DNA of 62,981 nt, the filler included, from Octopus bimaculoides (taxonomy: Eukaryota): assembly GCF_001194135.2 (NCBI RefSeq). It is 4 parts of 4 records of this genome, joined end to end, with 100 filler letters (N's around TTAATTAATTAA, not from the genome) between each part and the next. Parts side by side here need not be neighbours in the genome. Positions count along the whole stretch, not along the records: positions 13,701 to 38,431 come from NC_068987.1; 3 more parts are not named here. The stretch is one strand, 5' to 3'. This document shows, one piece after another, positions 13,601 to 32,962 of the stretch; the stretch's first letter is position 1, and each line of letters starts with the position of its first letter. A program made the translations under genes and the position numbers. Under the pieces are notes generated by a model. That model worked only from the letters and a program-made list of their open reading frames with translations, was not told the origin of the DNA and did no database searches.

Positions 13601-13734
13601 NNNNNNNNNNNNNNNNNNNNNNNNNNNNNNNNNNNNNNNNNNNNTTAATTAATTAANNNNNNNNNNNNNNNNNNNNNNNNNNNNNNNNNNNNNNNNNNNN
13701 AGACATACAAGTACACATACATATACATACATAT

Positions 13735-13903
13735 ATACGCCGGGCTTCTTTCAGTTTCCGTCTACCAAATCCACTCACAAGGCTTTGGTCGGCCCGAAGC
13801 TATAGTAGAAGACACTTGCCCAAGGTGCCACGCAGTGGGACTGAACCCGGAACCAAGTGGTTGGTAAGCAAGCTACTTACTACACAGCCACTCCTGCGCC
13901 TAT
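13735..13903 (-). mobile_element. SINE family B, 5' half (a second partial copy follows at about 13930-14045)
   Basis: Reverse complement of aggcgcaggagtggctgtgtagtaagtagcttgcttacc...cggaaactgaaagaagccc. Confidence 0.85.
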
Positions 13904-17063: not shown

Positions 17064-17258
17064 GTGCAATGGTACAATTACTTGGCTGATGCAAAATACC
17101 ACCTTCCTTATGAGAAAGACACTATAGCTTTTACTATTATTGGTCGACCTGATATGTTTGAGAAAGCTTTTAAAACATTCGTATGTAATAGAACCAGCAA
17201 GCCACTTGTTGATATTGACTACAAGTTTATCATGTTTTATATGAAGAAGATCCAACAG
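17064..17258 (+). CDS. MMACHC: MMACHC/CblC-like paralog A, coding exon equivalent to human exon 2 (VQWYNYLADAKYHLPYEKDTIAFTIIGRPDMFEKAFKTFVCNRTSKPLVDIDYKFIMFYMKKIQQ)
   Basis: Acceptor ctctggttgcag|GTG, donor CAG|gtaagc. 195 nt, phase 0/0, the same length as human MMACHC exon 2. By-eye match to human [31 protein letters not shown] (recalled). Confidence 0.9.
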
Positions 17259-18640: not shown

Positions 18641-18784
18641 GAATACAACAACGTCGATATTATTCTCAGAAACGTACGTGGACATCACAGCAATCTTAAT
18701 ACCAATATAGCCGCACACGTCACAGGTGTTGCTTACCGATATACTCAATCTGATGTCCTGCATTATACTTGGCCAAAGACAAAG
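18641..18784 (+). CDS. MMACHC: MMACHC-like paralog A, exon equivalent to human exon 3 (EYNNVDIILRNVRGHHSNLNTNIAAHVTGVAYRYTQSDVLHYTWPKTK)
   Basis: Long poly-T tract, then tggtttcag|GAA; donor AAG|gtatgt. 144 nt, phase 0/0. AAHVTGVAYRY...DV...W matches human [11 protein letters not shown]...DV...W. Confidence 0.88.
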
Positions 18785-19415
18785 GTATGTAGACATAACC
18801 GATTCTTGTTGATCGATAATTTTTCCTATAAATTACGCAAATGTACTTGCATAGCAAGTGAGATGCAGCACGAAGTTTTGTCAATGAACAAGTCGCGGTT
18901 TCAAAACGACGAAAATATTTTAATACAAATGAAATTTAAATGTTGAAGACTAACTATGGGTTTTTGTGTGTTCTTTGAATGGCTTGCAAACATCTTCCAC
19001 CGCTGCAACATGCTCGTACACACAAACCTATGTGCGTGCACACATTCACACACACACACATATACATGTATATATTATTTCATTGAAGCCGAAAAAAAAA
19101 AGAAAAGAACTCCACACACTCTTGCTCACAGTTTCACTTAGCCGTTCATCAAGCTGTTGTGATAAATCAAACTACTCTGAGTAACAGTCTGTAAAGTATA
19201 TTTATTCTTTGGACTCCAGTAAAGTAGCATTTTACTCCACCTTTAATATTCGAGTACTATTCTTTCCCATTTTGTTTTGCGCCTATGGGCTCACCTGCGT
19301 GTTAGAGAGAGTGAAATTCGAATCATAGGTATGTCAGTTCATTATAGAAAATATAACAGAAAAGTCCAATTCTTCCATTGCATGTAACACGGGCAACGCC
19401 GGGTATCTCTGCTCG

Positions 19416-19475
<60 letters not shown>

Positions 19476-20861
19476 TGTATGTGTGTGTGTGTGTGTGTGT
19501 AAGTATGTATGTATGTATGTATGTATGTATGTATGTATGTATGTATAGAGTGTACTGTTCCGTTATTGGCAGGATCAACAAAAATATATTCCATCCAGCG
19601 AGAGATAAATATTATTTAATAAACACAATATTTATATGCGAGCTACTATGAGTGTCACGCTCGGATAATAACAGTAATCGAACATGCTTGTGTAGTGTAG
19701 TGTATACGAGTCTGAACGATGACAGGATTGTAAAGTGAATCTCGAAGCACATAAAGCTATAAATTATAGAGTACGAATATTAGATTAGATCTCCTTCGGA
19801 TAGAAAAAGTTGAAGGCTCCTCGTGGAACTTTTCTACCCCTAAGTGTTTCAGCCCAATATTTAAACGTTATTATTTGTAGCTGCATTTGCTTCGAGACTA
19901 AAAGGAATTATTTCACGTTCTCGAAGTTTTTAATTTCTTATGACCTCAACATCATACAATTCTCTCTGGTGAGAATAAAGTTTTTAAAACGAATTGAGAA
20001 ATTTGAAGGATTGCTTTAGCTAACTAGTAGAGCACAACATGCTTACTTCGAGATTCGCCGTCCACACACATACACACACATGTATGTACATATATTAGTG
20101 TTTATTTTTATGTTCAGTTATAATAAAATCAATTTTATATTAATCTGATGGATTACTCCATTCTTTTGTACAGCGCAATTTTTTCATTCTTATACAAGAA
20201 TGTTGTTGACAGCGACTTCGAAGTTTTGGCTAACCAACCCATCGTCGGTCTTGCTTTTATATAGTTTCTGTTGAGTTCAAATCATCTATGGCCTACAGCA
20301 GACCCCCAAGTGCCACCTCTTTAAAAGTGTCGTCCGGGGCAGACCGCCCTCCACCCGTTACTATAGTGGATGGTAATTAGGTTTTTGTAGTCAGTTGTTA
20401 TGGAAAGGGGTTTTGGAAAAATTTTCATTGATTACATTTGGGGCTATGTTAGTATTTGGAATTTATTCATGCGTATAGCAATTGGTAAACAAACTTGTAG
20501 GTGTTTCTCTTTAGATAAGTGGGCACAAGGTTTGAAAGTATTTTGGGCGCTTTTGGTATTACTGGATTTAATCCTTTCGCTTTGACAATATAATATCTAA
20601 GGGACAAAGCCCAGTATTTAAACCCTTGGTAATTGGACTTGTCAACTTATTTTTTCACAAAAGAATGAGGGGATGTGGCAAGTTTAGGCTGGTCTTCTCT
20701 TTACCTTTGAGCTTTATATTGTCAAAACAATTATTTTATACTTTTACGCTGGCAAAAATGGAATTTATTTCATCATTCTTCGTAATTAAAAAAATCGGTG
20801 ACGTCAACACCAAAGATTAGATAATAATAAAAAAAAATAGCCAGAAATTATTATCATGTAT

Positions 20862-21258
20862 AGGCGCAGGAGTGGCTGTGTGGTAAGTAGTTTGCTTACC
20901 AACCACATGGTTCCGGGTTCATTCCCACTACGTGGCACCTTGGGCAAGTGTCTTCTACTATAACCTCGGGCCGACCAAAGCCTTGTGAGTGGATTTGGTA
21001 GACGGAAACTGAAAGAAGCCCGTCGTATATATGTATATATGTGTGTTTGTGTATCTGTGTTTGCCCCCCCCCCTTCCCCCACCATCGCTTGACAACCGAT
21101 GCTGATGTGTTTACGTCCCCGTAACTTAGCGGTTTGGCAAAAAGAGACCGATAGAATAAGTACTAGACTTACAAAGAATAAGTCCTGGGGTCGATTTTCT
21201 CGACTAAAGGCGGTGCTCCAGCATGGCCGCAGTCAAATGACTGAAACAAGTAAAAGAG
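20862..21258 (+). mobile_element. SINE family B, full length, ending about 37 nt upstream of the copy A terminal exon
   Basis: ggcgcaggagtggctgtgtggtaag...ccgggttcattccc (tRNA-like head), core gtggcaccttgggcaagtgtcttctac, 3' end ggccgcagtcaaatgactgaaacaagtaaaaga. Confidence 0.9.
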
Positions 21259-21294
21259 TATGTGTCATCATGATGTCTTCTCATCTATTTACAG

Positions 21295-21663
21295 AAGCCG
21301 CTTGAATTTGCAGTCCACCACAAGTATGGCGCATGGTATACTGTCCCAGCAGTGATTGTTTTTCGAGATTTCAAACTGCCCAGTCTTCTTTATCCTCTCC
21401 CATTCGATGCCCTTCCATCTCATGAACACAGAAGATATGTTCTACAGTCGCTTCACAATGGTACTATGGAATGGCGACATGCTTCTTTTATGCCAGGAAG
21501 GCAACCGTTTTCTGAGGAAGCAAAACAATATTTCTCTTCAAAATTTAATCAGAGAATTTCAATAGTTAAAAAAACCAAACAATCATGCAAAGAGGGGCGA
21601 TTCACGTATTTCTTTAAGCATATTCTTCCAGCCTTTATGCCTATTTTAGGATGTTGTATGTGA
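21295..21663 (+). CDS. MMACHC: MMACHC-like paralog A, terminal exon (KPLEFAVHHKYGAWYTVPAVIVF...FSEEAKQYFSSKFNQR...ILGCCM*)
   Basis: Acceptor catctatttacag|AAG; open to TGA at 21661-21663 (122 aa). H..YGAW, PFD, W, SEEAKQYFS and QR match human HPRFGGW, PHD, W203, SEEQKAYFS and QR230. Confidence 0.88.
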   Translation, partial: KPLEFAVHHKYGAWYTVPAVIVFRDFKLPSLLYPLPFDALPSHEHRRYVLQSLHNGTMEWRHASFMPGRQPFSEEAKQYFSSKFNQRISIVKKTKQSCKEGRFTYFFKHILPAFMPILGCCM

Positions 21664-22014
21664 CAATGAAGCTTGAAAGTAAATTCCAAAGATTTTCTTC
21701 CAAATTCCTCATAATAGTTATAGCATTAAAAGAATAGTAACTCTTTCAGATAATCCAACGATGCAAACCAAACCACGAAAATATTGTATTTTATTTCAAA
21801 TCATTTTGAGAAATGACAGTGTTGTGTAAATTAATAAAATTGCGTTTTCATGTTGTCGCAATTTTCTTGTAATCTCAATTTTCTCCTTCAAAGCAGTTCA
21901 CAGTCACTTGCTCTTGGGCATTCAATACTTACTTTCGTGTCGCAAATCGAATTTCAACGGTTACATGAAACAACAGAATCCTCAATACTGAACGAACATA
22001 CATACATACATTCA

Positions 22015-22045
<31 letters not shown>

Positions 22046-22181
22046 TTATTTATTTATTTATTTATACACACATATATACATTCATACGCATACATACGTA
22101 CCTAGCTAGCTACCTACTTTGTCAGTAAAGAAAACATAAATGCTTGTTGATATTTGAAGTTAGTGAAGCACTGGTCAATAA

Positions 22182-22523
22182 TTAAACCACTTTAACGTCT
22201 CTTTTGAACATCGGCGTAGAATTGGTACAATATTTCTTGACATCCTTTACGAATTCTTCGCGCTTTTTTCCAAATATCGAAAAGTATGCTTTTGCTTCTG
22301 GAGTATATTTCTTCACCACAGGAATGATATCTGCAAATTTCCAACTCGCCCAGTCATCATTATATTCATTTAATAATTTTATTCTTTTTGTGACGCTATG
22401 AACCACGTCTTTGGGTGACAGACAAGAGAAATTTTTTGGTAGTTTAACATTCTTAAATACGATGACACCTGGGAATGAAATCCATCCTCCATACAGTGGA
22501 TGAATAGCAACACCATAAATTGT
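22182..22523 (-). CDS. MMACHC: MMACHC-like paralog B, terminal exon (TIYGVAIHPLYGGWISFPGVIVF...YNDDWASWKFADI...YTPEAKAYFS...KR...RDVKVV*)
   Basis: Acceptor ttcttatatttcag|ACA; open to TAA (113 aa). GVAIHPLYGGW, N..W..W..D and AKAYFS match human GVCIHPRFGGW, NFHWRDWTYRD and QKAYFS. Confidence 0.93.
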   Translation of the reverse strand, partial: TIYGVAIHPLYGGWISFPGVIVFKNVKLPKNFSCLSPKDVVHSVTKRIKLLNEYNDDWASWKFADIIPVVKKYTPEAKAYFSIFGKKREEFVKDVKKYCTNSTPMFKRDVKVV

Positions 22524-25430: not shown

Positions 25431-25580
25431 CTTATTTGCAGGCCAGGTATCCCTAGGGACATCTCTTCGCTGATAGTAATATGCGGCCCCTGACACGTGC
25501 GCTGCTGTCTGTGATAAAATAACAGGATGTCCGGGGCCCAGCATCTTGTAACTAGACAGGAAATCAGTGTCAGGATATAT
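25431..25580 (-). CDS. MMACHC: MMACHC-like paralog B, exon equivalent to human exon 3 ([50 protein letters not shown])
   Basis: Poly-T...aatacag|ATA acceptor, AAG|gtcagt donor. 150 nt, phase 0/0. [21 protein letters not shown].W is nearly identical to the CblC signature [21 protein letters not shown]..DPW. Confidence 0.95.
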
Positions 25581-28663: not shown

Positions 28664-28870
28664 AGCAAAGAATTTCTTGAAATACTTTTGGTTACAGTTA
28701 TCAGTCGGGTCCCCGTCTAGGAGAACGGTAACATTTGATTCACAAATACATGGAATCAATGTTTTCTCGAACATATCTGGTGCTGCAACAACAGTTAGGG
28801 CCAGTGTATTTTTAGGGTAATTCAAGCGGAACATTCGTTTCATTGATTTAATTTCGTTGTAGCATCTCAC
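28664..28870 (-). CDS. MMACHC: MMACHC-like paralog B, exon equivalent to human exon 2 (VRCYNEIKSMKRMFRLNYPKNTLALTVVAAPDMFEKTLIPCICESNVTVLLDGDPTDNCNQKYFKKFFA)
   Basis: Minus-strand acceptor ttcttttatccag|GTG, donor GCT|gtaagt. 207 nt, phase 0/0. YNE, TLA, PDMF and DPTDNC match human YNE, TLA, PAMF and DPVDQC. Confidence 0.9.
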
Positions 28871-29682: not shown

Positions 29683-30445
29683 ACGAAGGGATCGAAGCTG
29701 CGCGACGACGCAACCTTCGTTTTTGGCGTTGAGGTGTTGGTCGAGGGCCATCCTCGCAGCCAACACGTTGGTTGCACTGCCAGTTGTAAGTGCCTCTTCT
29801 AGTTTCTTAACTAAGTCTCCCTCTACTCTATTTCGATCTATCACTAATTCTTTACTAAACCTAATAGATTCCGATTTAATTACCATTTTTAGGGCAAACT
29901 ACCAGCGGTTGTTAACGATGGCTCCTGTTAACGCCCTCTTAATTAACTCGCTAATCCGGTTCCTGTAAACCTGCCGCGCTAAGAGCGAAGCGTTGAGTTT
30001 CCAGTAACCGGGACCCTGCCTATGTGTCTTATCTAAGTCGAGCGTACACGTCACAAATTTGTGATCTGTGTAGCTGAATATTTTAAATTGTGGACATCCT
30101 ACACTATCTCTATCCGCTGTCCTACATAGAACTCTATCTAGATACGACCTCGACGACCCGACGCGGTTTGTTCAAGTCCACGTTGGCACGTTCGGATAGT
30201 CGAGTCGGAACCTGTCAGACAAATGGAAGCGTTAAGGACGGTGCATACACTGCCATCAGACGGAAAGCACACCCGTTTGTGCCATCGACGTCCAAGACAA
30301 CCAGCCTACCCTCCAGGTCTAGGAATATTGGCCTTACTTTTAGGTTTAGACTCTTCTGAAAAAGCACCGCGGTACCACCACCACCACCCATGTTTGGCAG
30401 ACAGGGAGAGAAATAAATGTCGAATTTTTTAGATAGGAATTTTTG
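29683..30445 (-). mobile_element. Tx1/L1-clade LINE ORF2 fragment, APE endonuclease region
   Basis: DIYFSPC..GGGGTAVLF..DLEGRLVVLDV..RLMAVYAP, then SYLDRVL..SYTDHKFV..GPGYWKLNASLL. Internal stops and deletions. Confidence 0.85.
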
Positions 30446-32123
30446 GAACCCCACTACCGCATTTGGATAGAGGGATTTGAGTGTGTGGTGCTGTGTTGGT
30501 GTCAGGTGTATTATTTTAATATGTTCTGGTGGTGTTGTTCGTGGGTGATTGTTAGTTTTGAAGTCACTGTGGCTATTTGCCATTCTACTGGACTTTCATC
30601 GTTAGACGAAAAGTCCGACGGATCAGAAGCGGGTAAGGGCAAGGCATCAGATTCTATGTGTGTACTTTTAGACGTTGTTATATTGTGTGGTGTGTGTGTT
30701 GTTGGGGAATTAGGGTTAGTATTTGTTTTTTTTCATTGGTATTTGTTTTCTTGGTTGTTGTTCTTGGTACTGGTGTTGGTCTATCTTATGATGTTGGTGG
30801 TGGTGTTGTTTCTCTAGTTGGTTTCGGTGTTGGAGGTAATTGTGATGGTGTTGTTTCTCTTCTTGATGCTGATGGTGATGTCGTTTGGTTTTGTTTGTTG
30901 GTTTGTTGCTCTTGACGAGATTCCATTTTTATAAAATATATTTCTTGGATCATTCGTGGGTTTGGTGGTGTTGGTAGCAAAGGTTGTCTTCTATTTGTTG
31001 GGTGTTTTGATTGTAATTGTTCTCCTTGTTGTTTTTTTTGTGTGCCAAAATGCACTTTGCTATTAAGTGGTCCGGGCTGCCGCAGAGGTAGCAACGTGGT
31101 TTTTTCCCCTCCGCCATCACATAGAAGCTTTGTCCGTTCTCGAGTTGGATCACATTTGGCAATTTTTCGATCGAATCTTGATCCATTTGGATCGTGATTT
31201 CGATCGATTTGCCCGGCCAATTATCATGATGGACAACAATGATTTCTAGAATGTTTATTGTTTTCAAATGAAAACATATCGCCGATGTGATCCACTTCGA
31301 TTCAATTTCAGGAGGGACATTTTTTATTTTTATTTTGCTTACCCTCTGTCCCATGTAGTATGGGACCATGACGAGTTCGTCATTTTGTAAGGCTTGCGTA
31401 GAGTGTTGGTTTGCCTCTTCCTGATTATGGAAGCGGACCTGTACAGTTTTATACTGGGGACCCCAGTTTATGTACTCTTTTATTTTCATAATCGGTTTAG
31501 CACATTTTTCTACATCTGTTTTTGCGATTTGTTCTGTTGATTTTTGGGTCTTTCTTATTATTTTGTACATGATTGTCCTTTTATCAACTTCCTCTCTAAC
31601 GCAAGGGTTTTCAAACTTTTTGACTTGCGGACCCCTTTATATTTCAGTCTTTACCTTATAAACGCTTACAAAATTTATACATAAATATTTGCTTAAAATA
31701 ACATATATTTTTACATTTATTTATTTAACAGTATTTAACAAATAGGTTTATTGTCAATTAAAAGATTTCGATTAAAAAAGATATATAAAATCAAATTGCC
31801 CATAAAAAGTATTTGCTGTCCACGGACCCCCTGTCTTGTCCTTGCGGACCCCCTGTGGTACGCGGACCACAGTTTGAAAACTCCTGCTCTAACGTGTTGT
31901 GGTGTGTGTAGTATTAAATTTTGCCCGGATGTTGTGAAAAGTGACCTGGTCTCTAGCAGTTCTTCAATTGTGAAATGTAAAATTTCTTTTGTTTTTGTTT
32001 TTTCATGTCTGCAAATTTTGCTGAACTTCTCTTTGTAATGTTGTCGTTGTGGGTGTTGGTGGTTGTCGCAGCAAAATTGGTGTTAGAGTAGTTGGCTTCG
32101 TGACCATAGTGCTCTTTTTGTTG

Positions 32124-32600: not shown

Positions 32601-32962
32601 GGGGCCTATTCCACCCTTAAAAATACCGAAACGAAAGTTGGGCGCTTCAGGCACTTCGAAAGCAAAAATGGGATCTATTNNNNNNNNNNNNNNNNNNNNN
32701 NNNNNNNNNNNNNNNNNNNNNNNNNNNNNNNNNNNNNNNNNNNNNNNNNNNNNNNNNNNNNNNNNNNNNNNNNNNNNNNNNNNNNNNNNNNNNNNNNNNN
32801 NNNNNNNNNNNNNNNNNNNNNNNNNNNNNNNNNNNNNNNNNNNNNNNNNNNNNNNNNNNNNNNNNNNNNNNNAATTCTATCGGCGATAAAATTATTATTT
32901 CCTTGTCAAAAAATGGCTGAAGCATATTGGCAGTAGCTAATAAACCTTTCTATTATAGGCTA

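Follow-up and report, generated by a model that had tools for sequence, protein, structure and literature searches.

Human CblC, the product of the B12-processing gene MMACHC (PDB 3SC0, 3SOM, 5UOS), has three arginines, R161, R206 and R230, that line its glutathione pocket (PMC10740964, PMC9464900), with D104 and P227 as neighbours (PMC10740964). The R161Q substitution weakens glutathione binding 25-40-fold and impairs dealkylation, R206Q protein is poorly soluble, cobalamin binding is lost in G147D protein, and Q131 forms a hydrogen bond to the cobalamin corrin (PMC9464900). D77, D80 and Y215 are additional hydrogen-bond partners of glutathione, as Ruetz 2017 is relayed in PMC9464900. The chemistry of invertebrate CblC varies, to include thiol oxidase activity and stabilisation of cob(I)/cob(II)alamin, and the enzymes of C. 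elegans (5UJC) and Trichoplax both use glutathione; the Trichoplax protein has the arginine triad, and the C. elegans protein is described as a glutathione-using dealkylase that lacks only Asp77/Asp80 (PMC11910325). From Trichoplax to human, the triad counts as a feature that defines CblC throughout the animals, and disease variants recur at R161 and R206. Here we describe two MMACHC-family genes, copy A and copy B, in a stretch of 62,981 nucleotides of Octopus bimaculoides DNA (the window), of which the piece at positions 13701-38431 was analysed. Both copies have Pro at position 161 and Ala at position 206. Judging from sequence comparison, we consider it on balance probable that A, B and a third gene, C, form an octopod cluster with a remodelled pocket, canonical glutathione dealkylation being left to another gene in related octopods.

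Results

Both octopus copies lack R161 and R206

The piece, which is AT-rich and full of repeats, is a 100% match to O. bimaculoides chromosome CM046607.1 of assembly GCA_001194135.2 (locus L009). A tblastn search with human MMACHC, a query whose identity was validated by alignments to PDB chains, identified two three-exon sets, copy A on the + strand and copy B on the - strand. The spliced products of these exons match RefSeq XP_014782766/7/8 (copy A) and XP_014782765 (copy B) at 100%. By codon mapping, the last exon of copy A (exon 4), with its stop codon, lies at 21295..21663 (+); WYTV-P-AV carries P161 (CCA, 21346-21348), EWRH-A-S carries A206 (GCT, 21481-21483) and FNQ-R carries R230 (AGA, 21553-21555). 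The last exon of copy B, also exon 4 and also with its stop codon, lies at 22182..22523 (-) and is identical to P0271; the corresponding segments are WISF-P-GV (CCA, 22472-22470), SWKF-A-D (GCA, 22334-22332) and GKK-R (CGC, 22262-22260). The arginine triad is incomplete in both copies, with R230 alone common to them. An earlier note on this DNA had cited these Pro161 and Ala206 codons, every one of which is present, and its account of what R161, R206 and R230 do in human CblC agrees with the literature (PMC10740964, PMC9464900, PMC11910325).

That note had aligned the copies by eye, and MAFFT on a large sequence set gapped position 206 of copy A, either of which could point to a shifted register with the arginines present after all. 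However, phmmer against human MMACHC PDB chains pairs "ggwisfpgv" and "swkfadi" of copy B with "ggwfairgv" and "dwtyrda", and pairs "gawytvpav", "ewrhasf" and "fnqris" of copy A with "ggwfairgv", "dwtyrda" and "paqrla", upholding the by-eye register. The same register for P161 and A206 was obtained with phmmer, tblastn and L-INS-i on a curated set, with invariant anchors, GGW/GAW and W203, on either side. A misalignment is excluded by the concordance of the three methods; we give a shifted register almost no credence.

Two further residues had been read as shared by the copies. Arg at position 230 is indeed present in both window copies, but not in the orthologues of copy A, which have Thr (O. 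vulgaris) or Lys (Argonauta); a genomic fragment of copy A type, P0021, also has Thr. Ala in place of Q219 is likewise present in both, but it has no diagnostic value, given that Ala219 is also found in the canonical octopod gene described below. All three of the further glutathione partners are found in copy B, with Y215 at 22307-05 (-) and the D77-P-T-D80 glutathione-contact loop kept in exon 2 (28664..28870, -), whereas copy A has only D77 (D80Y; Y215F, 21508-10, +).

The copies belong to an octopod cluster whose founder probably had both substitutions

A and B are not the animal's ordinary MMACHC pair. They are two members of a three-gene cluster, arranged A -> <- B <- C and spanning ~55 kb altogether, in which copy C (XP_014782776) lies ~14 kb beyond B in the same orientation as B. 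Orthologues of A, B and C are present in O. vulgaris and Argonauta hians, and the convergent order of A and B is kept in both species (L001 and L002, respectively). O. vulgaris (CAI9717092, P0008), O. sinensis (XP_036356450, P0266) and A. hians (P0025) each have, on a different chromosome or contig, a canonical R161/R206/R230 gene marked by the sequences WFAMRAA, WKARD and PKDR. This gene is the closest full-triad relative, with 41% identity to copy B, A219 in common and membership of the same cephalopod clade. By contrast with the paralogs, it has R161, R206, R230, D104, F158, A159 and P227.

In a bootstrapped neighbour-joining (NJ) tree, cephalopod and oyster sequences group with 99% support, the A clade and the B/C clade have 100% support each, and A joins B/C, with the canonical octopod genes outside, at a modest 71.5%. 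P161 and A206 are carried by the A and B orthologues in O. vulgaris and A. hians, except that Argonauta B has Leu161 (CTT); across the paralogs Ala206 does not vary, and a single one departs from P161. The Pro161 codons read are all CCA (copy A of O. bimaculoides, O. vulgaris and A. hians; copy B of O. bimaculoides and O. vulgaris). Since these states recur in the orthologues of A as well as of B, we attribute them to inheritance and not to coincidence, and their sharing between Octopus and Argonauta, together with the A + B/C clade, indicates that the founder of the cluster already had P161 and A206. This is what the earlier note had proposed for the common ancestor of the pair.

A HMMER scan of 1.84 billion representatives identified 284 family members, of which the best 150 were surveyed together with named homologues (~170 proteins). 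R161 is present in 138 and R206 in 136 of the ~170, and in the family alignment Pro161 and Ala206 are confined to the octopod paralogs, in keeping with their supposed rarity. A mammal-like MMACHC sequence (P0097, 226 aa) has Q161/Q206/Q230, a pattern that fits CGN-to-CAN decay, such as a processed pseudogene would produce.

Changes shared by the paralogs fall in or near the pocket

We compared the octopod proteins at the positions with 80% conservation or more across 86 canonical sequences. D104, F158, A159, R161, R206 and P227 are altered in every octopod paralog and kept in the canonical octopod gene, with F158 and A159 lying on the same strand as R161; S216T and Q219A are found in the paralogs and in the canonical gene alike. 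B and C retain essentially all of the other conserved positions, and the derived residues S104, G227 (22271-69, -, in copy B) and A206 are conserved across B/C. The altered positions comprise four of the seven pocket positions versus two of the 25 others (hypergeometric p ~0.01, a post hoc value that is only suggestive). On sequence grounds, this pattern looks like a remodelled pocket and not like decay. Variants that cause cblC disease in humans, R161Q/G, R206P/W/Q and G147D, hit the same positions, the last of them altered in copy A; unlike the disease variants, the octopod changes are fixed, ancient and under purifying selection, they come with further changes in the pocket, and a normal copy exists in related octopods as well. 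By analogy with the human variants, loss of glutathione-dependent chemistry in A and B, as the earlier note had envisaged, is plausible.

Copy B, but not copy A, keeps the cobalamin contacts

Both copies score well above the 27-bit cut-off of Pfam PF16690 (201.1 bits for B and 132.7 for A, with 212.3 for C and 265.1 for the canonical O. sinensis protein). AlphaFold2 (AF2) models have mean predicted local distance difference test (pLDDT) scores of 92.7 (B) and 89.2 (A), and the top Foldseek hits of both are human MMACHC, with all of the top 20 being MMACHC/CblC chains. The best human chains superpose with template-modelling (TM) scores of 0.78-0.82 and root-mean-square deviations of 1.8-2.7 A (1.9 and 2.5 A for the top hits). 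The models thus predict the CblC fold, a nitroreductase-like N-terminal module with a helical C-terminal module, for A and B. Both copies resemble human MMACHC in PF16690 membership, in fold (TM ~0.8) and in three intron positions, and differ from it by R161P, R206A, D104S/V and P227G/F and by having no Pro-rich C-terminal tail.

We next considered residues that contact cobalamin, taking Q131 and G147 from the literature and adding the family-conserved positions H122, Y129/Y130, Q118-T119, H151-P152 and G155-G156-W157. All of these motifs are conserved in copy B (QTAAHVSGAAYYYQ, HP and GGW); its exon 3, at 25431..25580 (-), encodes the intact cobalamin motif SQTAAHVSGAAYYYQRRDV together with S104. 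Copy B shares with human MMACHC the motifs QTAAHVxGAAYYYQ, HP and GGW as well as Y215, D77, D80 and R230. By contrast, exon 3 of copy A, at 18641..18784 (+), encodes a degenerate motif, NIAAHVTGVAYRYTQSDV, with Q118N (18704-06), T119I (18707-09), Y129R (18737-39) and Q131T (18743-45), and its exon 4 adds G147E (21304-06), P152H (21319-21) and G156A (21331-33), so that copy A departs from human MMACHC at G147, Q131, Y129, P152, G156 and Y215 in addition to the positions shared with B. The lost contacts of copy A, along with D80 and Y215, are also lost in its Argonauta orthologue. Given these losses, and because human G147D protein binds no cobalamin, the role of B12 carrier or sensor that the earlier note had offered for both copies is doubtful for copy A.

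In place of the Pro-rich tail, the C-terminus of copy A is a hydrophobic sequence rich in Cys, GRFTYFFKHILPAFMPILGCCM (21589-21660, +), which AF2 places in a long helix. Similar tails are present in O. vulgaris copy A, in the genomic fragment P0021 and, more loosely, in Argonauta, and none is present in canonical octopod MMACHC; we speculate that the tail might be a membrane-association or lipidation signal. At the other end of the protein, the N-terminal helix encoded by exon 1 of the paralogs (P0271, P0273, P0001, P0003, P0005 and P0274, outside the window) is far more hydrophobic than that of canonical MMACHC, and most paralog copies have an N-x-T sequon (NAT or NST) within it. The N-terminus of another sequence, P0181, is signal-peptide-like.

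Observations that weigh against a remodelled pocket

Several observations weigh against the reading that the paralogs have a remodelled pocket with glutathione dealkylation left to another gene, including the modest bootstrap support for the A + B/C clade. One set comes from other molluscs, where R161 is not the universal residue that it had been taken for. Both full-length proteins found in Crassostrea virginica (P0192/P0193) have D161 (WISLDGV), R206 and K230, and Sepia pharaonis MMACHC (CAE1172260, P0026) has D161/R206/R230. The transcript P0012 has D161/R206/Q230, P0181 has Gly161 and Solemya velum has the full triad. R161 therefore seems labile across molluscs, and the D161 of C. virginica and S. 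pharaonis suggests that its loss alone may be compatible with normal function. The Asp161 proteins (Crassostrea, Sepia and P0012) resemble copy B in lacking R161 and in having Ser159 (WISLDGV versus WISFPGV), and the Sepia protein shares S104, K204 and G227 with B/C; as orthologues of the octopod cluster they have a weak bootstrap value of 47.5%. Unlike the paralogs, the mollusc proteins with Asp or Gly at position 161 keep R206 and have K, Q or R at position 230, and none has Pro161. Since R161 varies among molluscs, it is Ala206 that is the truly unique state. P0012 is an expressed, intron-less transcript, present in six RNA-seq runs (L003-L008).

The D161 proteins of oyster and cuttlefish are otherwise canonical-looking, and they lend some weight to the possibility that the octopod paralogs still bind glutathione and dealkylate, using relocated basic residues (Arg159, Lys/Arg204 and Arg230). 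Arg159 is present in B and C of O. vulgaris and A. hians and in C of O. bimaculoides; residues i and i-2 of a beta-strand share a side, the model shows a strand here, and Arg159, on the same beta-strand as R161, could reach the pocket and compensate. Both window copies have a basic residue at position 204 (K204 in B, 22340-38, -; R204 in A, 21475-77, +) and keep R230, and copy B has D77, D80 and Y215 besides. However, Arg159 is missing from the window copies themselves, which have Ser (B; TCA, 22478-76, -) or Thr (A; 21340-42, +) at this position. Lys204 is no replacement for R206, because the canonical octopod gene has K204 beside R206. Moreover, every paralog has Ala206, a state seen nowhere else in the family, and R161Q alone causes the 25-40-fold loss of glutathione binding in the human protein (PMC9464900). 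We therefore regard a compensated pocket as unlikely.

A second set of observations concerns constraint. Between Octopus and Argonauta, the ratio of nonsynonymous to synonymous substitution rates (dN/dS; Nei-Gojobori, NG86) comes to 0.12 in B and 0.17 in A (pN ~0.25 versus pS ~0.70), values that are rough because dS is saturated over this distance. Both the A and the B lineage are under purifying selection across the Octopus-Argonauta split. By contrast, constraint on copy B is weaker when O. bimaculoides is compared with O. vulgaris (dN/dS 0.48), and exon 4 of O. vulgaris copy A contains a 244-bp insertion resembling a short interspersed nuclear element (SINE) at L001 ~29770-29990. The insertion is flanked by an ~18-bp direct duplication, GGTACTATGGAATGGCGA, the target-site duplication, and a TAG lies 5 codons ahead of the O. 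bimaculoides stop position; with this insertion and early stop, copy A may be dispensable or disrupted in the O. vulgaris assembly. Copy A also lacks many family-invariant residues, and its conserved exon 1 was not found in O. bimaculoides. These observations would fit duplicates of which one or both are pseudogenes or are being lost, such that the missing arginines reflect relaxed constraint. Against this, O. bimaculoides exons 2-4 are open with good splice sites, A. hians has matching exon coding segments with copy A exon 4 intact, the low long-term dN/dS is accompanied by conservation of the derived residues (A206 in all paralogs, P161 in all but one), and Octopus and Argonauta agree fully in the A-specific motifs NLNTNIAAHVTGVAYRYTQSDV and HHxYGAW. 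The AF2 models are confident, and a 1.1-kb assembly gap coincides with the missing exon 1 of copy A. Decay is thus very unlikely in our view; over the long term a pseudogene reading is ruled out by dN/dS and conservation of the open reading frames, and it persists as a minor rival owing to the O. vulgaris insertion.

Lastly, no canonical O. bimaculoides protein was found in the protein database clusters. The 90% cluster of the O. vulgaris protein P0008 has O. vulgaris and O. sinensis members and none from O. bimaculoides, the three paralogs of which fall in clusters of their own. We take the missing protein to be an annotation gap; as it was not found, a division of labour is proposed for related octopods only.

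Gene structure and repeats of the locus

The two genes are convergent, with a spacer of 518 bp (21664..22181) between their stop codons. Exon 2 of copy A, homologous to human exon 2 (human aa 28-92) in tblastn searches with human MMACHC and octopod proteins, lies at 17064..17258 (+), has the splice sites CAG|GTG and CAG|GTAAGC in phase 0, and is a 100% match to P0020. All introns of both copies are in phase 0 with good AG/GT sites. The ends of the high-scoring segment pairs and the AG/GT sites coincide with human codons 27/28, 92/93 and 143/144, which we take to be the intron boundaries of human MMACHC, indicating an orthologous gene structure. Exon 1 of A or B was not found in the piece with a regular expression, an exon-1 hidden Markov model or low-stringency tblastn. 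Copy B exon 1 is located ~3.4 kb past the end of the piece (L009 10001-10087), and the conserved exon 1 of copy A probably falls in the 1.1-kb assembly gap.

Repeats are found in and around both genes. Intron 1 of copy B contains retrotransposon remnants at 30950-31570 (-), 35492-36202 (-) and 35703-37349 (-), among them part of a reverse transcriptase and gag-like open reading frames with CCHC zinc knuckles; gaps in the assembly (32680-32872, 34713-35071 and 35871-36140) break them up. A short interspersed repeat is present in two copies of opposite orientation, 92-94% alike, at 13713-13903 and 20860-21260, the latter just upstream of the last exon of copy A; by eye and unaligned, this element has short motifs in common with the O. 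vulgaris copy A insertion. Microsatellites of the (ACAT/TATG)n type occur at ~19400-19560 and ~21995-22110, the latter within the spacer between the stop codons. In O. vulgaris, extra near-identical exons or models of B, C and A type on the same chromosome (L001 41576-41785, -; P0006, P0007, P0022 and P0274) suggest a recent segmental duplication of the cluster, and several O. vulgaris models form chimeras with a hAT/ZBED-like element (L001 35226-37046).

Discussion

We propose that the cluster arose by duplication of a B12-processing enzyme before the split of Octopus and Argonauta. Its founder would have had Pro161 and Ala206 along with changes at D104, F158, A159 and P227, and the outcome would be a less cationic, remodelled co-substrate pocket that has since been maintained by purifying selection. 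Glutathione-dependent dealkylation of methylcobalamin and adenosylcobalamin would presumably be carried out by the canonical R/R/R CblC of related octopods. Because copies B and C have the CblC fold and keep all conserved cobalamin-contact motifs, copy B, and with it C, is most likely still a cobalamin binder, although one without canonical anchoring of glutathione. With glutathione not so anchored, B and C may be glutathione-independent cobalamin handlers (a reductive decyanase, aquocobalamin reductase, carrier or buffer) or may use another co-substrate; we would expect glutathione-dependent dealkylation to be lost or strongly reduced in them, and reductive decyanation to be possible. Copy A, conserved despite its lost contacts, most likely became a pseudoenzyme of CblC fold that has either a new ligand or a role in binding a partner.

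A more far-reaching proposal is that the cluster is a neofunctionalised branch of B12 chaperones, in which B and C would use a non-glutathione co-substrate on cobalamins or dietary corrinoid analogues and A would be a cobalamin-blind regulator or partner. We consider this distinctly unlikely. Histidine-derived thiols, which have been reported in octopus eggs, would be one candidate co-substrate for B and C. In a stronger variant of this proposal, O. bimaculoides would have no canonical gene, and A, B and C would do all B12 processing without the triad.

RefSeq treats all three copies as ordinary MMACHC under the name "cyanocobalamin reductase / alkylcobalamin dealkylase", a label that is probably mistaken, at the least in the case of copy A. 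The literature searched for MMACHC in octopus and other cephalopods yielded only a quantitative PCR primer in a study of squid gut, and this octopod variant of a known family is previously undescribed in that literature. A conserved paralog clade with Pro161/Ala206 and co-varying pocket residues amounts to a natural experiment on pocket function. With the paralogs it could become possible to tell cobalamin binding and decyanation apart from dealkylation that depends on glutathione, to learn which second-site changes let a protein tolerate the loss of R206, and to find a non-glutathione co-substrate. If the neofunctionalisation proposal were borne out, they would be the first natural CblC proteins with re-engineered co-substrate specificity.

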